A DNA stretch of 64,000 nucleotides from positions 14,942,001-15,006,000 of the forward strand of contig OZ116703.1 in assembly GCA_964199315.1 (NCBI GenBank). Reading direction: 5' to 3'. How positions within the stretch are numbered: the stretch's first letter is position 1; each line of letters opens with the position of its first letter. The stretch comes from Orbicella franksi. Taxonomy: Eukaryota. The translations under genes and the position numbers were made by a program. Shown one piece after another: positions 42 through 14,120 of the stretch. The notes under the pieces are model-generated. The model was not told the DNA's origin. It searched no databases and saw only the letters and a program-made list of their open reading frames with translations.

Positions 42-2588
42 CTATTTCTTTGCTGCAGCAAAAGAAGATATTCTTCATATTCAGGACGAACTTCTTCTTT
101 TGCAGAGGGAACCTGTTTCAATATTTTACAATGTATGAAAACATATAATAAATAAATGCAATTCACTATTCAATAACTAAAAAGCCTTAACAACAAACCA
201 TAAAAAATTCATCTACTGATCATGACCACTTCCATGCCTTGGAGGTCCCTATAAGTCAAGCTTTATGTTCCAGCCTGATCATGTAGTACTGTAGAGAGCC
301 ACACAGTGTCTCTCTGATTGGTTGTTAGCAAGTAAAATAGATATTAAAATAATTGGATATTATCATATTTAAGAGGCACCCTCTGTAACTTTCTCAGATA
401 AATGGTTTAGATAAGTGATTCACAAAAATATAACTTTCAGTTCAATTCCATTCTAATTTAGCACTGGGGCCACCATCTTGGTTTTGCCCCTCTGAGAGGG
501 CTTTCAGCGGCCATTTTAGGACACATTTTGAACAATTTGCCATACAAAGAAAACGATATACACTGTAAATCTGGATAAAAACCCTTTATTCGAGACAAGC
601 AAATGTTTGTTGTTACATTGAGAGGCTGTTTGGGCAATTTGATCATCATCTGATTTTTTACAGAATTTTAAATTTCTTCCCTTTCAGACTACTCATGAAG
701 CGCCATAAAAAAGGCGAAATCAGTCTCAGTTCATAAACACGCAAAAAAAGAACTTGGCCGATATCCAGCCATCTTGACCTGACACTTGGTCAATAACCAT
801 ACTTATTACATGGCTGTGTCTCACAAGGACTGGAAACTACCAAATTCACGAATTTGATTGGCTGAAATCGATATTGACCGTGGTCTAGATTTTCCCATCT
901 AGACCGGCATCTAGACCGGTTTCATTTTGCGTTGAAAAAGTAGTAAACTAAAATACAAAAATGTTCACCATTTTCTTTTATTTTCTTCTCAATCATTTGT
1001 GGAAGTGCCAAAAAGCCTGATGACAAAAAAAAAAAGTAAAGAGGACAAGCAAATTTCGGCAGGTTTAAGTTAAGCTCATCACCATTCGCGAGCAAAATGT
1101 CAGCAAACCAGTTACATTAAACGAATTAAAGTTTTCTTCTTTGCCATATAATAAACATCTTATTAACCGAGCTAAGTCAGTCTGTACAGGAGAATCTTGA
1201 CCTTGGTTGTGTGTACAGACCTCACTGCGTTTGGTCTGTGCTCACAACCTCGGTCAAGATTCTCCCATACAGACCTCCAGCTCGGTTAATAAGAGCTAAA
1301 TATTGTTCCAGATCATCTCTGTTCATGCCAATCTTATTTCCAGGAACCCTGCTTTTACTGGTCATGGACAAGAAGGAGTGAGAGTTCTGAGAACTAGATC
1401 AGCTTGAGAACTGTGTTGTATGTGTACAATGTAATCATTCTTATGCTAGAAGTCATTATTTTCATTTACAAGTACATATACATGTACCTCTTCTTTGTGT
1501 TTTCCAGGCTTTCCTCTTGATTTATCCCACTTTCCATGGTGATCTATAATTTGATCAAAAATTCAACCAATCAATCACTCAGTAACACATGTATACACAG
1601 TATTGCACAGGCCACAAGAATCTTCAAGTTTCCTTAATCCAATGGATGAGTGTACATGATCATTTTAGCTTGACCCAGTCAAGAAATAACAGCTCATGAT
1701 ACCTTAACACAGCACAAGTATTGCTGGAATATTGAAATCTACCCATCTTTTATAAAATAACTGCTTTCATCAGTCGATAGATCTGTTTAGATGAGAGCAT
1801 ATAAACACGGTTAAGAAATTTTAGATTTGGGTGTACTTTGAGAAATATTTCATAAAAGCAATAGAGTACTTTATCCGTGTTTACATAACCTCATTTAAAC
1901 ACTTGGGGGGGTTGGGAGAATTCTCAAAAGTTATGCTAACCCTCAACTGCATCTCAGGTTTGCATAACTTTCGAGAATTGCGTCTCGCAAACTGTGTCTT
2001 GGGTTTGCATAACTGTATTGAATTCTCTGAACCTCCCTCGTGTTTAGATGAGGCTATGTAAACACAGAAAAAGTGCTCTTTTGCTTAAGTATTGCATCCA
2101 ATATATCCACTAGAAAAATCTCGTAGAAAAGTCTCTCTTGTAAGTCTAAGGAGGGAGATGTTGATCAAAAAATCTAATTAATACTACATTCGGTATGCAA
2201 CTTGAATTTTTTCTTGTTCTTGCTGCATGAAAGTTTTCTTATAATATTCAAAAAGAGGAAATTTACCTTAGCTATAAAATTACAAACCATTTACTATATA
2301 TTAAAAATTAAGTTTAAAAGAACATATTCTAAGCAAATAATCGAAGCAAATAAAGGACTTCCTCCTGACGAAAGGTGCCTCAGACGCCCAGAAGCATAGA
2401 TATCGTTATTCCCGAAGTTTTTAAATTGGCTATGCTTTAAAGAAAATAAGGATTGAACTTACAATTACAATTTAATTATAAGCTTAAGTAGAAAGTTGGT
2501 ATGTATACAATATGGCTGCAACCACGGAGACCGTTCATTAGCGGGAATACCAGCTGTCATTAAAACGTAATTGCAGCTTACCTTCCAT
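42..2588 (-). CDS. KATNIP: Katanin-interacting protein (KIAA0556), first three coding exons; gene continues beyond window start
   Basis: Exons complement(2582..2588, 1488..1543, 42..112) all have GT-AG boundaries and compatible phases (1, 0). They give MEDHHGKWDKSRGKPGKHKEE-VPSAKEEVRPEYEEYLLLLQQRNR, matching the KATNIP N-terminal motif as I recall it (human HDEYLILLQQRNR). Not in the ORF track. Confidence 0.85.
1160..1292. repeat. Palindromic segment of an abundant anthozoan non-autonomous repeat; related pieces at about 720-800, 30725-30850 and 32830-32960
   Basis: Arms TTATTAACCGAGC..GTCTGTAC..GAGAATCTTGACC and GGTCAAGATTCTC..ATACAGAC..GCTCGGTTAATAA are inverted. The CAGCCATCTTGACC / GGTCAAGAT motif recurs at the other sites. 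Confidence 0.6.
1877..2065. repeat. Fold-back (palindromic) repeat element
   Basis: GTGTTTACATAACCTCATTTAAACAC...GAGAATTC on the left is inverted as GAATTCTC...GTGTTTAGATGAGGCTATGTAAACAC on the right. Confidence 0.6.
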
Positions 2589-2881
2589 GACTGGGCTTGG
2601 ATTTTCCAAGGTTTGGGAGATCATCTAACATCTTCCGATCTGCGCGTCCAGTTTATTACAGATAATGGTTTCATAGTTTCAAGAAATTAGGCGAAAAAAT
2701 TCCCAAAACATACACGACCTCAGAGATTTTCCCTAATGGCTCGGTTACCAAGTGCTTTGTTGTTAAAGCATTCTGGGTAATTGTAAATCCCGTGGCATTG
2801 CGCTCGTTATCCCGCATGATCCCGCAACTGGTTAAGCTCAGTACGTGACTGTTGCTTCAAAGGAACGCAACGAACGTGATA

Positions 2882-3025
2882 TTTTCGGGTGAAAGTTTGC
2901 ATCAAGAGCAGGAGAGCCCCTGGGCAATTACTCCGCTTACCGAACCACTTCAGGCTCTCCCGCTCTTGATGTAAACTTTCGCCCGAAAAGCTGCCCGACT
3001 ACCTGCCCCTGGGTCTCCGAGGATT
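2882..3025. mobile_element. MITE-like hairpin element; same family end (GACCAACTGCCCCTGGGT) near 7890-7907
   Basis: Inverted arms of about 37 bp: TTTTCGGGTGAAAGTTTGCATCAAGAGCAGGAGAGCC and GGCTCTCCCGCTCTTGATGTAAACTTTCGCCCGAAAA, followed by CTGCCCCTGGGTCTCCGAGGAT. Confidence 0.6.
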
Positions 3026-3469
3026 CTTCGACTTCGGCTTCTCCCATATTATTGCGTCATGTGACACGGGAGAGTTCGAGCGTTCCATGGGTATAAAGGT
3101 TGGATATCTTTGATAGGATCCAAAACTGATCAGTATTACAAATTGAAGGTTCTTGAATTGCCCCTGGGATCAATTCCAACTGTGGGCTTCGAATATTTTT
3201 TCTTTCTTTCTTTCTTTCTTATCCTTTGAGGGGTCTTAGAAAAGACGTAGCAGTGATGAAGTCACCCCGAAGTCACATAGAGGTATCACCCTTCTCTTAT
3301 AAAATATTTCTGCAGTCTGATATCGAGTACATGCTTGAGAAATGTAAAGAACAAATGATAAACATTGCCAATGAAAAACAAATCACTCGTGAGTAAATCG
3401 TTTCACCTCTACCTCAATGTTTGCTATTTTAAATTCGAGGTGAAATAAAGGTTATTATCAGTTGTACTT

Positions 3470-3474
3470 ATTGC

Positions 3475-3512
<38 letters not shown>

Positions 3513-3985
3513 CAAAATCAAAACCGTTCAACAGATTAAGTCCAGAATCTGGGAAAGGAAAGAAGGTAAATATGCCGGGACTCTCGCCAAGATTCTGGTC
3601 ACATTAATTTTTCTTATGCAAGATATGAGGAGAAAATTTTTACCCAAATCATTTATAGAGATTTGCATGGAGACGCCATGCTGGTGTCCATCCGTATAGG
3701 TACCAACATGGCGGCCGGAAACCAACAGAAACATCTGTCAGTAAGTTTTGCTACAAAAGCGTGAATTTTCTCATGACAGCTCTCTAGGTCCTCATGTAAA
3801 TGCCGCGTCACGCAAAAGCTTAGAAATTCAAGCCTAGTGTATCACAAAACCAAGAACCCATTCGGAGCGAAACTGTGTATGAATGTTAGTTTCAGCTGCT
3901 CTTATCCATCATTAAAGTAAAATTGCAGGAAGATCAATAGTTTTGTAGTTTGAATTTTGGTGACGTCATGTGAAAACCAGCTATT
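3470..3985. mobile_element. Non-autonomous DNA element (MITE), superfamily unassigned
   Basis: Imperfect terminal inverted repeats TTGCTGGTTTTCAGTGTCACGCCA and TGACGTCATGTGAAAACCAGCTATT. Confidence 0.55.
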
Positions 3986-4499: not shown

Positions 4500-5867
4500 A
4501 TGCTGCTCATAAACGCCGTGAAAGGTGCACGAACGACGCAAGTTAAAATGCTCATAAAAGTTGGAATAAACGTCAATGAAGTAGACGAAAATGGACTTAC
4601 AGGTCTTCTTCACTGCTGCTTTCTTCAAGATGCTCGAGCAAGGATGAAAATTCTGAGATGTTTGATTGCAGCAGGTGCTGATCTCAACAAAAAGGACATT
4701 TATGGACGTACAGTTCTCAGCTGGGCTTGTCTTAGGGGAAGAGTTGAAATGGTTAGATATTTGCTGAACGACCTTCTTTGCATTGATCTCCGAGTGGATG
4801 TCACAGACAAAGAAGGAAACAATGCGCTACTTCTTTCTGTGATGTCTGGCAACTTTCACATTGTGAAAATGATGGTGGAGGTTTTAAGAGACACAGCGCT
4901 TGCTAGTGAGATTAATAAAGCTAACAACGATGGTATGCGGCCTTTAATAGCTGCGTTTTTACGAGGAGATAAACTCTGCGCGCAATTTCTCATAAAGCAA
5001 GCAGGATCTTCAGTGTCGAGTGTCCTTAAGTACCGCAGGGCCCTTCAAAACGGATCTCTTGAGTTTTTTACATGTTCATCGCTTTTGTTTGACTCTCCAC
5101 ACGGTAATTTCCATATTGCTGGAAATGAGCAAACAAGCCAACGTTTTGTTCAATCCACAGAAGACGACATTTTTGGGTTTCTGTTTGCAAAGGATGAAGA
5201 CATGTCCGACGCGCAGACGAGCAAATCCCAAGAAATAAAGCTGGACGACAATAACAATAATCTGGCGCAAAAACATCTTCTGTTGTCAAGAAGATCTGGA
5301 ATAAGAAATCAAGGAAATGTTCTATCATTTCAACCTCAACGACCTCCTTCAGCAGAAACAATTTCAGACATCTCCCAGATAAACACTTTTAGTTCTCCCG
5401 CGGACAACACTTCAAGATCGGCAAATATCACGCGGGAAGTGTCCGATTCGCAGAGCGCTGGTTCGTCGTCACGAACATCCGTTCAAAAGCTGCTGATCCT
5501 GTACGCAGAACAGATTTCACCCTCCTACAGACAAGGCTTACCCATACGTAGATACACGCCCACCCAGCCCGATATCTTTAATGAATCTAGCAGAGACATT
5601 GACTCCAGACGCTCTAGTTTGCTTACGGGGAACGAATCCGACCGAAAACTGCAAGCGTTTGCGGACTCCTTGGCAGGACCTTCACCGGGACTTCTTGGTG
5701 AATCCCTTATGGATCAGCAGCTTCGTATGAAATATGCTCGCAATTCTAGAGCCGCCAGTATGCAAGTTCCAAGGTTACCGGCCCTTTCCGTGGGGCGCGG
5801 GAGAGTCAAAAGAACAAGATCATCCACTATCATGTCGGTTAACAAAAACTACACGAACTCTAACTAA
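4500..5867 (+). CDS. Intronless ankyrin-repeat protein, ANKRD63/ANKRD34-like (paralog 1), 455 aa
   Basis: About five N-terminal ankyrin repeats ([32 protein letters not shown]) and a Ser/Arg-rich disordered tail. Architecture resembles ANKRD63. Confidence 0.85.
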
Positions 5868-8469: not shown

Positions 8470-8650
8470 CAGTATCATACATTACCGTACAGTATCATAC
8501 ATTACCGTACAGTATCATACATCACCGTACAGTATCATACATTACCGTACAGTATCATACATTACCGTACAGTATCATGCATTACCGTACAGCATCATAC
8601 ATTACCGTACAGTATCATACATTATCGTACAATATCATACATCACCGTAC
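8470..8650. repeat. Minisatellite, 9 x 20 bp (CAGTATCATACATTACCGTA)
   Basis: Nine head-to-tail units counted directly, with only a few substitutions and no spacers. Confidence 0.97.
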
Positions 8651-9594: not shown

Positions 9595-9794
9595 AATAGG
9601 CCCTTTGCCCGACCCGGTCACATGGTACAAAATCACACATGCTGGGACGCAAGTTGCACAGTGGGACTTCCAAAACAAAGACAGGTCAAGGTGGACTGGT
9701 AGGAGTTGCTTTGTTTTGGAAGTTCCACTGCGCAACTTGCGTCTCAGCATTGGTGATTTTGTACCATGTGACCGGGTCGTGCAAAGGGCCTATT
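9595..9794. mobile_element. Palindromic MITE with arms of about 90 bp
   Basis: AATAGGCCCTTTGCCCGACCCGGTCACATGGTACAAAATCAC... is inverted as ...GTGATTTTGTACCATGTGACCGGGTCGTGCAAAGGGCCTATT. Possible TA TSD. Confidence 0.85.
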
Positions 9795-9984
9795 AATGCG
9801 CAAGGACAGCGAGTTATGTTCTTGCAAAAACGGCGGCGTCTTACTACCGTCACTGCTTGAAATATTTGTCTGGAAACCGAGAAAAAAAGAGAGAGCACTC
9901 TAATGATCTGAGTGGCGTAAACAAAACAAGACTCTACTGTCTTAAAAGATATACAAGTGTGATGTGTCTATTCTATTGGTGGAA

Positions 9985-12505
9985 TTAGTTGCCTCCTCTG
10001 AATACCTTTGCTACTTCCACCATCAGTCTCATAGTTTGTTCACAGCTTCTCTCTTCTCTCTCACGGTCCATTCTTGTCATTTGAAGTAAAAACTCCCTGT
10101 CTTTTCGATCGCTGTCCTCCATGTAATCTTTAAGAAATTGAAGTGGTTGACCTTTCTTGTCTTGCGCACCGCTATCGTTTGCACGTCTGCTATCTCGGTT
10201 CGATGCTGTCCCGTGGGTCTCTCCCATGCTGTTGTCATTGCTACTTACACCAGAGCCAAAACGCGAATCCCCACCGTGGGATGGAAGAGCCACACTGCCA
10301 CTATTCCCCCTAGAGTTATCATGGGCATTTGCCTGACTGCTTTTAAACACCTTTGCTACTTCCATCATCATTTTCATTGTTCGTTCAAAATTTCTGTCTT
10401 CCCTCTCACGGTCCATTTGTGTCATTTGCAGCAAGAATTCTCTATCCCGTCTGTCGCTTTCCTCCATGTAACCCCTTAGAAACCGAAGCGTGGACACCTC
10501 TTCATCTTCTGCTGGCGCTTTTCTCTTGTTCCTTTTTTTGGGTGGCTCTCTCCTCTGTGGTATTTCTCTCTGATCAGGCAAGGCCTGGCTGACTTCGCCT
10601 GTCAACCCTGTGGTGGTGTCTACGTTAAGCGCTGCACTTGTTGGAATATTAACAACAACCATCTCATCGCTGGCGTTGCTGTCTTCATTCTCTCCACTAG
10701 TTACCAACGCTCTTTCATTCTCTTGAGTTACCGCTGGACTAGCGTCGGTAACATCTAAGGAGCTGTTTCCAAAAGTCTTCCCGAGGACCTCATCGACTTC
10801 GTCAAAGTAGTCGCACGTTCGGTCATCGCCTCCAGATTCGAGGATGCGCTTTTTGGTCGTCTTGTAATCGAACACTATACTCTTCATCCGCCCTTTACAC
10901 TGCTGACCCGAACGGAACGTTTCAAAACCGCACTGCGCGAGTTTCTGATTCAGCAAACGCGCCACCACATCCCAGGCTTTTGCGTTCCTTTGCTGGCTGA
11001 TGTTTTGGTACTGCTCTCCCCAGAGCGCGATAAGAAAGCGCGTCTCGGCATCGGACCAATTTGGAGATCGTCCCGGTTTGACTGGCATGGCTGATATGAA
11101 CGAATCAGCACCTCTCGATGTGGACCCACCAGAAGTTAGGCCGTGTCCGTCACGTGAGATGCTCGTAAAGGCGCTGAAGCGGGATTCTGACGACTGTTGA
11201 GAGGATATTTGGGTACTGCCAGTGGGTGGGGCCACTGTGCTCCTCTCACGTGACGTTTCAGATTGGAAAACTAGGTTTGATCCGCCTTTGTCAGATCCCG
11301 AGGGAGACAGCATTGAGGCAGCGAACTGACTGTAATTTAATTTTGACAAAAACTGTTAATTCGACAGGATGGAAACAGGTGGACATAACTGAGAATTTTA
11401 AAAAGAAGCTGTGGTTTTTTTATGCTGTAAAAAAGAGAAAAACTAGTGAAAAAAGACTGTGCTTTGCATATTCTCTCAGTCTCTATCACACTTTCGTGAG
11501 AAAGGTTTCAGTTTATTCTCATCCTCCATCCACCATCCAGGAGCAGGCTATATTGGAAAAGTGACTTGTTGGGGATTCTCCTTCAGAATAGAGTTTCAAG
11601 TCGCTCGCCAGTTTCGGAGGCTCTGATTTACTTTCCGCGACCAGAGGGGGCTAGCGGGGGGTTGATAAGAAAAACCCCACCAATCCTACGTATGGAGTGA
11701 TCTCGACCCATGCAAGCAGAATTTTACTCGATTGCTTTATCATGTTCATTATTCCCGGTATATCTTTTTCAAATTTCAACCCTTCTACCGTAAGTATTGT
11801 GTATAAATGTATCAGGCATTTTCAGTCTGTCATCAAAGAGGGTAAATAGTGCCGAGCTACATTTGTTTACATCAAATCGCCGTAAATTTTATACAGGTAT
11901 ATTCCGAACAATTTTCGTCGCTGCAAGGTTAAAAATAACACTTTATACTTGTGTGAACGCAAGCTCTGTCTGTCAAATTAAAAGCGAGTTTCTTTCCTCT
12001 TAGAAAATAAAACAAGTTGCCGCGTTTTTACGGTAAAGAAAGTGAAAATCACGGAGAATCCAGGCGTCTTTGTGTTGCTCGCTGTTTAATATTTTTTTTG
12101 CAATTCGAACCCGCATAGAATGCGAATAGTCTTTGTCTGCACTTCAATCGCTCAATTTGGACTACTTTCAAAGACACGTTCTAAAACCATCACCAGCATG
12201 TAAATTCCTCCGAGAAAACGATAAGTGCACGAGTTCTACCGATAGCTTTCTAAAAACGCTTTCTAAACAAGTTCGGGGCGAACCCGATAATAAAACTCGA
12301 TGGAGACGGATGGAGTCGAAACCCATGTGGACGTGAACATAACGCAAGCGGTTTGGATCCGTTTGCAGGTTTTGTGGCTCAGTAAAAAGCTTGTTTAGGG
12401 AGATATCGAAACGCTTGAACTCATACCTAAAATAACATGTATTAGAGAGCTTTCTTACCTGAAGCTTTCAAGGTTTGCGAGCGGACTGCTATCTGGTTTA
12501 TCCAT
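9985..12505 (-). CDS. Myb/SANT-like (trihelix, MSANTD/NAIF1-type) DNA-binding protein, Harbinger ORF1-derived, 463 aa, two exons
   Basis: Exon 1 is 12505..12459 (caaacATGG, MDKPDSSPLANLESF, CAG|GTAAG donor). Exon 2 is 11329..9985 after an AAATTACAG acceptor, phase 2 matched. The ORF-track start at 11349 is a TTG. Trihelix motif NWSDAETRFLIALW...AWDVVA...RSGQQCKGRMKSI, an NLS-like KKRNKRK, and two C-terminal helical repeats. Confidence 0.88.
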
Positions 12506-12821
12506 GTTTGAACACAAGGGAAATCGATACCAGTCAAATGTACGACGCGAAAGTGAATAAGCCTTGTCAAAACTCGCGCGCTGATTGGTTTACGAACAAG
12601 ACACAAAGAATTAGCAATTCTAAACTGGTGTAGATTTACAAGCGTCGAGAACCAAAAGCGTCCACATCTAGCTGCGTCAGTTAGACTCGTTTCACTTTGA
12701 AATTCGCTTAGAAGACGCACACCGGACTAGCTTTGGAAAACCCATTCTCTACAGCAATAAGGGTTTCTTTTGGTTGGCGAACTCAGCTGACTTCGTGGGA
12801 TCGAAAGAGCTTGAACTCTTG
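12506..12821. promoter_or_regulatory. Putative bidirectional promoter shared by the SANT gene and the HARBI1-like gene
   Basis: Only about 320 bp lie between divergent ATGs. CCAAT box (CTGATTGG at about 12581), CGCGCG, TGCGTCA and raised CpG content. Function is inferred. Confidence 0.6.
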
Positions 12822-14120
12822 ATGAAAATGGAGTATCAAAGTGTTGTTGACACGAACGGGGCTCAATTCTTTCTTTATGCTTTAGCTGCCATTCAAGCTT
12901 CAAGGACAAATAATCACCGAGCAAAGCTCATTCGAAGATATCGCACACTCAAGAAGCGAAGGATTCGAACAATGACGGCGTTACTAGCATACATCGAACA
13001 ACAGAAGCGTATACCGAAATTACCGTCTGCTCCCGAAGCTGGTCCGCCGAAAAGAGTTTGGGTTTTGCAAAGGGATCAATTTATGTTCGAGGAGTTACTA
13101 GCCGGAAATCTTCCAGAGGAAACATGGCATCAAAATTTCCACGTTTCAAAGAAGACATTTTTTAAGATTTGCGACATAGTTCGCCATGAATTATCTAGGC
13201 AAGACACGAATATGCGACCCTCTGTGTCCTTGGAAAAAAGAGTTGCAGTCGCGTTAAATCGCCTTGCAACTGGGAGTTGTTACACTGCTTGTGGTGTAAG
13301 CTTCGGGCTCCCCAAATCTACGGCGAACGTTGTAAAAAATGAATTTTGTGATATTTTGAGAAGGAAAGCGGCCAGTTTTATCAAGTTTCCAAAGAGCGAC
13401 GACGAAGTACGAAAGGTTATTGGTGGGTTTGAAGACATCTCTGTTTTCCCTCAGGTGGTCGGTGCGTTAGATGGTACGCACATTAAAATCATAGCACCCA
13501 AAGAAAACAAGTACGACTTTTTAGGGAGAAAGGTGTTTTATAGTGTTCTCGTTCTGGGGGTGGCAGACAGCTACTGCAAGTTTATTCACGCAAGTGCAGG
13601 ATGCCCTGGTGCAGTGAGTCGCGCAGAAATGCTACGGAACAGTGCGTTACAGCGTGACATTCAAAATGGCGTTATCTTGAATACTCCAGGTCGTTTGATT
13701 GACGGCAATGAGGTGAAGCCCCTTATAGTCAGCAACTCTTCTTTTGACTTGAGTTCTTGGCTGATGACACCCTATGTACCAACACCAAATGTTACCCCTA
13801 GTGAGAGCAGTTTTAATGCTGCATTGAGCTCTGCAAGAGAAAAGATTGTACAAGCATTTGGCTTGTTGCGGGGCCGTTGGAGATGTCTTTTGGAAACACT
13901 CAAAGAGGATACCCTAAGGGTTCCCACCACTGTTATTGCATGTTGTGTTTTGCACAATCTGTGCATCGACCTCGGGGACAATGCACCCGTTGAGCCTGTT
14001 GTCACTCAGGATGACATGGAGCTTTTTGATGACGACAGTGATGACTGGTCAACTATGGAAGAAGGAGGCAAAGAGTTAAGAGAAAAAATAAGAAACTATT
14101 TAGACACATATGGGTATTAG
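12822..14120 (+). CDS. Harbinger transposase-derived protein (HARBI1/ALP1-like, DDE_Tnp_4 fold), probably nuclease-dead, about 430 aa
   Basis: Intronless ORF; first ATGs at 12822 and 12828 (track start 12774 is TTG). Family motifs FHVSKKTF, EKRVAVALNRLATG, FPQVVGALDGTHI, WLMTPY, AFGLLRGRWRCL and ACCVLHNLC are present. Catalytic-site changes are described in findings. Confidence 0.92.
   Translation: MKMEYQSVVDTNGAQFFLYALAAIQASRTNNHRAKLIRRYRTLKKRRIRTMTALLAYIEQQKRIPKLPSAPEAGPPKRVWVLQRDQFMFEELLAGNLPEETWHQNFHVSKKTFFKICDIVRHELSRQDTNMRPSVSLEKRVAVALNRLATGSCYTACGVSFGLPKSTANVVKNEFCDILRRKAASFIKFPKSDDEVRKVIGGFEDISVFPQVVGALDGTHIKIIAPKENKYDFLGRKVFYSVLVLGVADSYCKFIHASAGCPGAVSRAEMLRNSALQRDIQNGVILNTPGRLIDGNEVKPLIVSNSSFDLSSWLMTPYVPTPNVTPSESSFNAALSSAREKIVQAFGLLRGRWRCLLETLKEDTLRVPTTVIACCVLHNLCIDLGDNAPVEPVVTQDDMELFDDDSDDWSTMEEGGKELREKIRNYLDTYGY

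Follow-up and report, generated by a model that had tools for sequence, protein, structure and literature searches.

We analysed a 64-kb stretch of the Orbicella franksi genome (assembly GCA_964199315.1, contig OZ116703.1, positions 14,942,001 to 15,006,000 of the forward strand), hereafter the window, within which all positions are given. A single open frame on its minus strand, at 9985-11349, encodes a Myb/SANT-like protein that ends in two similar modules, each predicted to be helical. This repeat, and the transposon-derived gene pair to which it belongs, are the subject of this report. The protein has the following parts.

10786..11064, minus strand: Myb/SANT-like DNA-binding domain Myb_DNA-bind_4 (PF13837), residues 96-188 of the 454-amino-acid open reading frame (ORF); hmmscan E 2.7e-16, 60.2 bits against a cutoff of 27
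10513..10545, minus strand: basic cluster PPKKRNKRKAP; K260, K263 and K265 invariant in alignment A2
10345..10488, minus strand: module 1, 48 residues; predicted helix 10330-10512; 28 invariant columns
10144..10344, minus strand: linker, 67 residues, rich in G, S and N and predicted to be disordered (predicted local distance difference test score, pLDDT, <50)
10000..10143, minus strand: module 2, 48 residues; predicted helix 9997-10149; 26 invariant columns

Translation of the minus strand at 10488-10345 and 10143-10000 exactly reproduced both stretches quoted in the initial annotation of this DNA, and they are identical at 35 of 48 residues as given there (13 mismatches, counted by hand on the translation). 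When segments of 77 residues around each module were compared by BLASTP, 37 of 61 positions were identical and 53 of 61 positive in an ungapped alignment (E 1e-26). The module copies are 78% identical at the DNA level when read in register over 144 nt, and a wider DNA alignment of them spans 201 nt. The proportion of nonsynonymous differences between module 1 and module 2 (pN) is 0.118 and that of synonymous differences (pS) 0.706 by the Nei-Gojobori method; the DNA differences between the copies are therefore mostly synonymous. This bears out the earlier description of many of them as synonymous or conservative. The G/S/N-rich linker described there was also recovered, as 31 of the 67 spacer residues are G, S or N by inspection. 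A hidden Markov model (HMM) of the module, applied to the entire window translated in all six frames, found only the two copies (10336-10494 and 9991-10149). Module 2 is followed by RGGN and the stop codon. No Pfam family matching the module was found by hmmscan.

Judging from its composition, the PPKKRNKRKAP cluster is probably a nuclear localisation signal. Upstream of it, at 10642-10700 on the minus strand, the motif (M/I)VVVNIP follows an acidic, serine-rich run (ENEDSNASDE) and is invariant in 23 of 23 aligned orthologs; its pattern is that of a candidate SUMO-interaction motif.

Module number in orthologs and relatives

A word search returned 37 ortholog clusters at 56-100% identity, of which 23 were aligned. 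All 23 carry both modules, each with its own diagnostic residues. In an exhaustive profile search of 1.84 billion representatives, the two-module group appeared as one 50% representative, followed by more distant Myb proteins. The module HMM was then run over 315 fetched proteins, comprising 153 members of the ortholog group and 162 others, the latter mostly from the best 150 matches of the exhaustive search. Two modules were present in every one of the 153 orthologs. The module was detected in 34 of the 162 other proteins, each of which has exactly one.

In full-length single-module relatives the module ends 0-5 residues before the C-terminus, typically as ...AKIFKGD plus one residue, and module 2 therefore holds the ancestral position. 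One of these relatives, P0047 (31.7 bits to the module HMM), is the ORF1 protein of an intact Harbinger element from a Tara Oceans marine metagenome. The element is a 3,140-bp unit (717-3856 of locus L010) with 16-nt terminal inverted repeats (TIRs; one mismatch) and a CTA target-site duplication on both sides. The P0047 gene lies tail-to-tail with a 413-amino-acid DDE_Tnp_4 gene, and the transposase keeps its D-D-E triad. Two other contigs break exactly at the ends of the element, as would be expected of a repeated element. The gene for P0040 is likewise tail-to-tail with a DDE gene. The initial annotation had asked whether active Harbinger ORF1 proteins routinely carry two modules. They do not, as all 34 module-bearing relatives, including the ORF1 protein of the intact element, have one.

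A second conserved Myb-like group (P0039, P0304 and P0305) has members that are 59-69% identical over the full length, with one module each, and is the closest relative overall of the coral gene. Some of its members lie on contigs of 0.67-1.1 Mb. The locus of P0039 (L008) showed no informative neighbour on its 2-kb contig. This group may represent another domesticated gene or the ortholog in non-scleractinian cnidarians.

Age of the duplication and selection on the two copies

A maximum likelihood tree was built from 46 coral modules and 13 single modules. Coral modules 1 and 2 together form one clade (93/86 support), to which none of the single modules belongs. Within it, the module 2 sequences make up a monophyletic group (89/80) opposite module 1, and sequences of the Acropora/Montipora type cluster within each copy. 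This topology indicates a single duplication on the stem lineage of the coral gene, preceding the split of Complexa and Robusta. That split dates to several hundred million years ago.

Nonsynonymous divergence (dN) was computed over the eight orthologs with DNA in hand, which include both Complexa and Robusta corals, and differs among the parts of the protein as follows.

Myb domain: dN 0.067
Module 1: dN 0.079
Module 2: dN 0.080
Middle region: dN 0.282
Linker: dN 0.352
N-terminus: dN 0.399

Over the whole gene dN is 0.20 against saturated synonymous divergence (dS), and dN/dS is ~0.03-0.04 for the Myb domain and modules. The value for the modules (~0.04) is if anything too high, since synonymous sites are saturated. 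Mean pairwise protein identity among the 23 aligned orthologs is 87% and 88% for the two modules, 88% for the Myb domain and 55% for the linker. Neutral decay of the second copy, which the initial annotation had considered, was not observed, as dN is about 0.08 in both copies, like that of the Myb domain. By these rates, purifying selection acts on each copy as strongly as on the DNA-binding domain. The doubling is nearly unchanged in every coral lineage examined and is therefore regarded as an old functional change, not an accident.

The copies have 27 of 54 near-invariant positions in common, and modules 1 and 2 are equally similar to the outgroup modules. Four conservative differences are fixed between them across the 23 orthologs (Q27R, R39Q, K42R and K52R), and position 37 is Y or F in module 1 versus S or C in module 2. 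These fixed copy-specific residues and the monophyly of module 2 ruled out recent gene conversion as the reason why the copies are similar. The longest exact DNA run common to both copies is 9-17 nt, which is further evidence against recent conversion.

The linker measures 59-69 residues between the 54-residue HMM units in 153 proteins, with its sequence free to vary. Two conserved islands, PRG(S) and G-D-x-R-F/L, stand within it (10144-10344), with R74, D88 and R90 invariant in alignment A3, and may be short linear motifs.

Gene structure, neighbours and domestication of the pair

The exons of the Myb/SANT gene and the genes around it are given below.

12459..12515, minus strand: exon 1 of the Myb/SANT gene (at least), from RNA contigs; ATG at 12505-12503
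11330..12458, minus strand: intron, 1129 nt; junction 11329->12459 in runs X1 and X13
9985..11329, minus strand: exon 2, remaining coding sequence with the stop at 9985-9987, from the ORF and RNA contigs
12822..14120, plus strand: DDE_Tnp_4 partner gene, head-to-head with the Myb gene; hmmscan E 1.1e-28; D-D-E changed to D-N-V
4500..5867, plus strand: ankyrin-repeat (Ank) gene, convergent with the Myb gene, found by hmmscan; a non-transposon neighbour that marks synteny

Both modules and the linker lie within exon 2. Over 9799-11329, RNA contigs from two studies are continuous and match the window letter for letter, and the stretch is present in 14 RNA runs. Mis-assembly as the origin of the repeat was ruled out by the RNA contigs and by the 153 independent sequences. 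Upstream of exon 2, the gene model rests on reading the splice junction 12459/11329, which has GT..AG on the minus strand and appears in the RNA contigs of two runs. Transcript ends and strand were taken from the contigs; the raw polyA reads (X23 and X24) barely cover the gene. The ATG at 12505 adds 21 residues before the ATG at 11313, which fits the length of XP_020608706.1, the 463-amino-acid RefSeq model of Orbicella faveolata that shares a 90% cluster with the window protein.

The DDE_Tnp_4 ORF extends over 12774-14120, about 1.4 kb upstream of the Myb ORF and on the opposite strand, and the first Myb exon lies ~300 bp from the DDE start codon. In all five coral DDE proteins aligned, N replaces the second D and V or I replaces E; the transposase of the intact L010 element keeps both of these catalytic positions in the same alignment. 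No credible pair of TIRs was found flanking both genes around positions 9-15 kb of the window.

Synteny was compared between the window and seven fetched ortholog loci from Complexa and Robusta corals. All three genes occur, in the order DDE, Myb, Ank, in the window and in L001, L003, L006 and L007, while L005 and L015 show Myb and Ank and L016 shows DDE and Myb. The DDE_Tnp_4 pairing is thus seen also in five ortholog loci (L001, L003, L006, L007 and L016). The named orthologs come from Orbicella, Oculina, Desmophyllum, Montipora and four Acropora species; we take Oculina and Desmophyllum to be Robusta and Montipora and Acropora to be Complexa. Ortholog clusters hold one to few contigs each, as for a single-copy gene.

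Given its conserved position across Complexa and Robusta and the lack of terminal repeats, the locus is a co-domesticated Harbinger pair of stony corals, made up of a Myb half and a catalytically dead DDE partner. It has neither the flanking TIRs nor the catalytic triad of an autonomous Harbinger element, and it is syntenic, single-copy, under purifying selection and represented in spliced RNA, as a host gene is. Descent from the PIF/Harbinger ORF1 lineage is apparent from the PF13837 domain, the DDE_Tnp_4 neighbour and the homologous C-terminal module. A literature search for coral or scleractinian Harbinger domestication returned nothing relevant, and the doubled module is not described there. 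In sum, the repeat is genuine and old, it is confined to the domesticated coral gene, and it is under strong constraint.

The coral pair is arranged head-to-head, whereas the genes of the transposon relatives examined (L010 and L014) are tail-to-tail, ~270-280 bp apart. This implies either a different gene arrangement in the source element or a rearrangement of the locus.

Two repetitive features lie nearby. Just past the 3' end of the Myb transcript, a palindromic element at 9595-9794 resembles a miniature inverted-repeat transposable element (MITE), with 86-nt arms that are 93% complementary and with very high contig depth. A single RNA-library contig skips 9619-9789, which suggests an allele without most of the MITE-like element. 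A tandem array at 8470-8650 consists of nine copies of a 20-nt unit with 93% matches.

Predicted structure of the C-terminal region

The last 181 residues were modelled with AlphaFold2, using 20 orthologs. Two long helices were predicted, at residues 7-67 and 128-178 of the modelled segment. Their pLDDT is mostly above 90, and the linker between them is predicted to be disordered (pLDDT <50); the predicted template modelling score (pTM) was 0.51. A Foldseek search of this model against the PDB gave no match. VIA-align gave only generic matches to coiled coils and helical bundles, under the meaningful range of Z. Its best match of low root-mean-square deviation (rmsd) was a designed helical hairpin (helix-loop-helix), at 3.6 Å over 95 residues and including both helices. 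A profile of the module found nothing significant among the sequences of solved structures (best E 0.12). In the last dozen residues of each module, 8 of 12 are hydrophobic, with one polar stripe. This composition suggests that the module end may be buried in a bundle or groove rather than in a simple two-stranded coil.

A possible role for two tethered helices

The C-terminal parts of the Myb-like proteins ALP2, HDP2 and Ping Myb bind the nuclease partner, as mapped by truncation, and the binding site on the nuclease is its N-terminal half (PMC7282668, PMC5339849). The C-terminal part of NAIF1 is also reported to bind its nuclease-derived partner, as cited in one of these papers (PMC7282668). 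The premise of the initial annotation, that this region of Harbinger Myb-like proteins contacts the transposase, therefore holds for these four proteins (PMC7282668, PMC5339849). In the transposon ORF1 relatives of the coral protein, nothing but the module is conserved C-terminal to the Myb domain. Because of this and its homologous position, we take the module as the putative partner-binding helix. Each coral module keeps all residues conserved in transposon ORF1, including the very hydrophobic ...TM+xMME(V/M)AKVF end. Since this end needs burial and the ORF1-conserved residues are kept in both copies, two tethered docking helices appear to be the likeliest mechanism.

In the proposed mechanism, one Myb protein would offer two docking helices on a disordered tether, and the helices would join one helical bundle with the partner. 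Most simply, the partner side would be supplied by two protomers of the neighbouring dead-DDE protein, each through its N-terminal region, so that a contact ancestrally needing two ORF1 molecules would be hard-wired into one chain. Taken as a whole, the explanation that a Harbinger ORF1 helix module was duplicated in a domesticated coral gene and acts as tethered docking helices has, in our judgement, a slightly better than even chance of being right. The narrower proposal, by analogy with ALP2, HDP2, Ping ORF1 and NAIF1, that the two helices dock on the neighbouring dead-DDE protein, probably on two protomers of it, is the reading that we prefer, at somewhat less than even odds. The suggestion in the initial annotation of doubled partner valency or of two different partners is plausible on the same analogy.

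It is more speculative, and rather unlikely, that the duplication converted an ancestral 2:2 assembly of ORF1 and transposase into an asymmetric complex in which one Myb protein clamps a dimer of the dead partner with its two tethered helices, in the manner of SNAP-25. Were this so, each complex would hold a single DNA-binding domain, with altered target recognition, and a concrete molecular step from a transposition complex to a host regulator would be in hand.

Several observations weigh against the docking of two tethered helices on the partner after domestication. An alignment of coral DDE proteins with the L010 transposase showed no matching duplication in the N-terminal region of the DDE partner. 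Module 1 modelled alone, as a control, gave one helix of equal confidence, and the high pLDDT is therefore no evidence of helix packing. The pTM of 0.51 and the hairpin match weakly hint that the predicted helices may bind each other. As to timing, the initial annotation saw an innovation after domestication. This is supported in that the two-module form was seen only in the syntenic, TIR-less, single-copy coral gene, although the duplication may have come before domestication. Finally, P0038, a singleton coral ortholog from one ENA metagenome contig of 2162 nt, has one chimeric module that consists of the N-terminal half of module 1 and the C-terminal half of module 2, with 118 residues missing between. 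The joint falls inside a 16-residue stretch identical in both copies of that lineage. In the locus nearest to P0038 the copies share at most 17 identical nucleotides, which is short for collapse by an assembler, and P0038 may therefore be a real recombinational deletion allele rather than a mis-assembly. Should P0038 be genuine, a coral can carry the gene with one module. It is the only one-module form of the ortholog seen, against 153 two-module ortholog proteins.

If the helices do bind each other, they could pack as a hairpin that replaces the coiled coil of an ancestral ORF1 homodimer. The protein would then be an intramolecular pseudo-dimer, acting as a monomer whose single Myb domain is paired with a single composite surface, with no gain in valency. 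We regard this as possible but unlikely. The pTM of 0.51 was obtained with ~112 of 181 residues ordered and is, by our estimate, above that of a single placed helix; the designed helix-loop-helix match spans both helices, and the contrast of Y/F and S/C at position 37 could reflect knob-and-hole packing. However, amphipathic helices are often folded back on themselves in AlphaFold2 models of monomers, and such self-packing of interaction helices is a common artefact of the program; module 1 alone reaches the same pLDDT. A hairpin would also need no tether of conserved length (59-69 residues), and the helix end, with 8 of 12 residues hydrophobic, is too hydrophobic for a two-helix contact alone.

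A division of labour, in which one module, probably module 2, binds the DDE partner and the other a different host protein, seems to us somewhat less probable again. The fixed differences at positions 27, 39, 42 and 52 and the change at position 37 speak for it, as does the fact that only module 2 keeps the free C-terminal context of the single-module relatives. Domesticated Harbinger Myb proteins are also known to form bridges to host complexes; ALP2, for example, connects ALP1 with MSI1 (PMC7282668). In ALP2, however, this second partner is bound through the N-terminal region and not through a duplicated helix. Moreover, the fixed differences are few and conservative, half of the module positions are near-invariant in common, and the two copies are equally similar to the outgroup.

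That the two-module form was inherited from the source transposon, with no innovation in the host gene, is improbable. The source element was not found, the single-module groups nearest to the coral gene (P0039/P0304/P0305 and P0079/P0046) yielded no taxon or informative context, and the head-to-head layout of the coral pair would fit a true source family that is unsampled. Yet none of the 34 module-bearing proteins among the 162 non-orthologs fetched has two modules, and coral modules 1 and 2 are each other's closest relatives in the module tree. An assembly duplication or a redundant copy drifting to loss, for which only the singleton P0038 with its collapsed single module could speak, is refuted by the presence of two modules in all 153 orthologs, which stem from many assemblies, and in spliced RNA contigs, by a dN of 0.08 in both copies against 0.35 in the linker, and by saturated synonymous sites between the copies.

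Comparison with known systems

Tethered docking helices in a domesticated Harbinger protein would be of interest because co-domesticated Harbinger pairs have been described from vertebrates, plants and insects, and little is known of how their protein contact changes after recruitment. What appears to be new here, by comparison with those pairs, is a domesticated Harbinger Myb-like protein with a duplicated putative partner-binding helix. The one-module transposon ORF1 and the two-module host protein form a natural experiment, which could reveal how, as a transposition complex is turned to a host function, its stoichiometry or choice of partner is rewired. The scope is one structural detail of one coral gene family.

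NAIF1 and HARBI1 of vertebrates resemble the coral pair in that a Myb-like ORF1-derived protein and a DDE_Tnp_4-derived partner are host genes without TIRs. In contrast to them, the coral genes are still adjacent with a promoter region in common, the DDE triad is destroyed and the helix is doubled. The coral pair is an independent domestication, as no vertebrate-like ortholog cluster appeared in the exhaustive search. In Arabidopsis, binding to the transposase-derived partner has been assigned to C-terminal regions of ALP2 (171-261) and HDP2 (151-259), which are sufficient or necessary for it, and ALP2 has a predicted C-terminal coiled coil (PMC7282668, PMC5339849). ALP2/ALP1 and HDP2/HDP1 differ in being plant pairs with one interaction region each, and ALP2 reaches MSI1 through its N-terminus.

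The insect PIF pairs of transposase and MADF proteins, APLG/APM and LPLG2/LPM2, are like the coral pair adjacent, single-copy, without TIRs or target-site duplications and under purifying selection; unlike it, they have a MADF-type domain, and no internal duplication of the partner region is reported for them (PMC9710019). The ORF1 protein of the intact L010 element shares with the coral protein the Myb_DNA-bind_4 domain, an acidic serine-rich spacer, a basic cluster and the helix module, there ending in ...AKIFKGD. It differs in having one module at the extreme C-terminus, in an element with TIRs, a target-site duplication and an intact DDE gene tail-to-tail. With the trihelix (GT) factors of plants, the coral gene, which is animal and transposon-derived, was seen to share the Pfam domain. 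These factors use a C-terminal coiled coil for oligomerisation, and the resemblance of the helices is by analogy.

A mechanistic parallel to the proposed coral model is offered by SNAP-25 and Sec9, in which two long helices in one chain are joined by a long flexible linker and both enter one multi-helix bundle with partner helices. In the structural comparison SNAP-25/Sec9 tie with RSC for the top Z (7.8), at an rmsd of 7-8 Å and below the Z that is meaningful for helical models. The likeness is an analogy of mechanism, with no sequence relationship, and does not count as evidence for the model.

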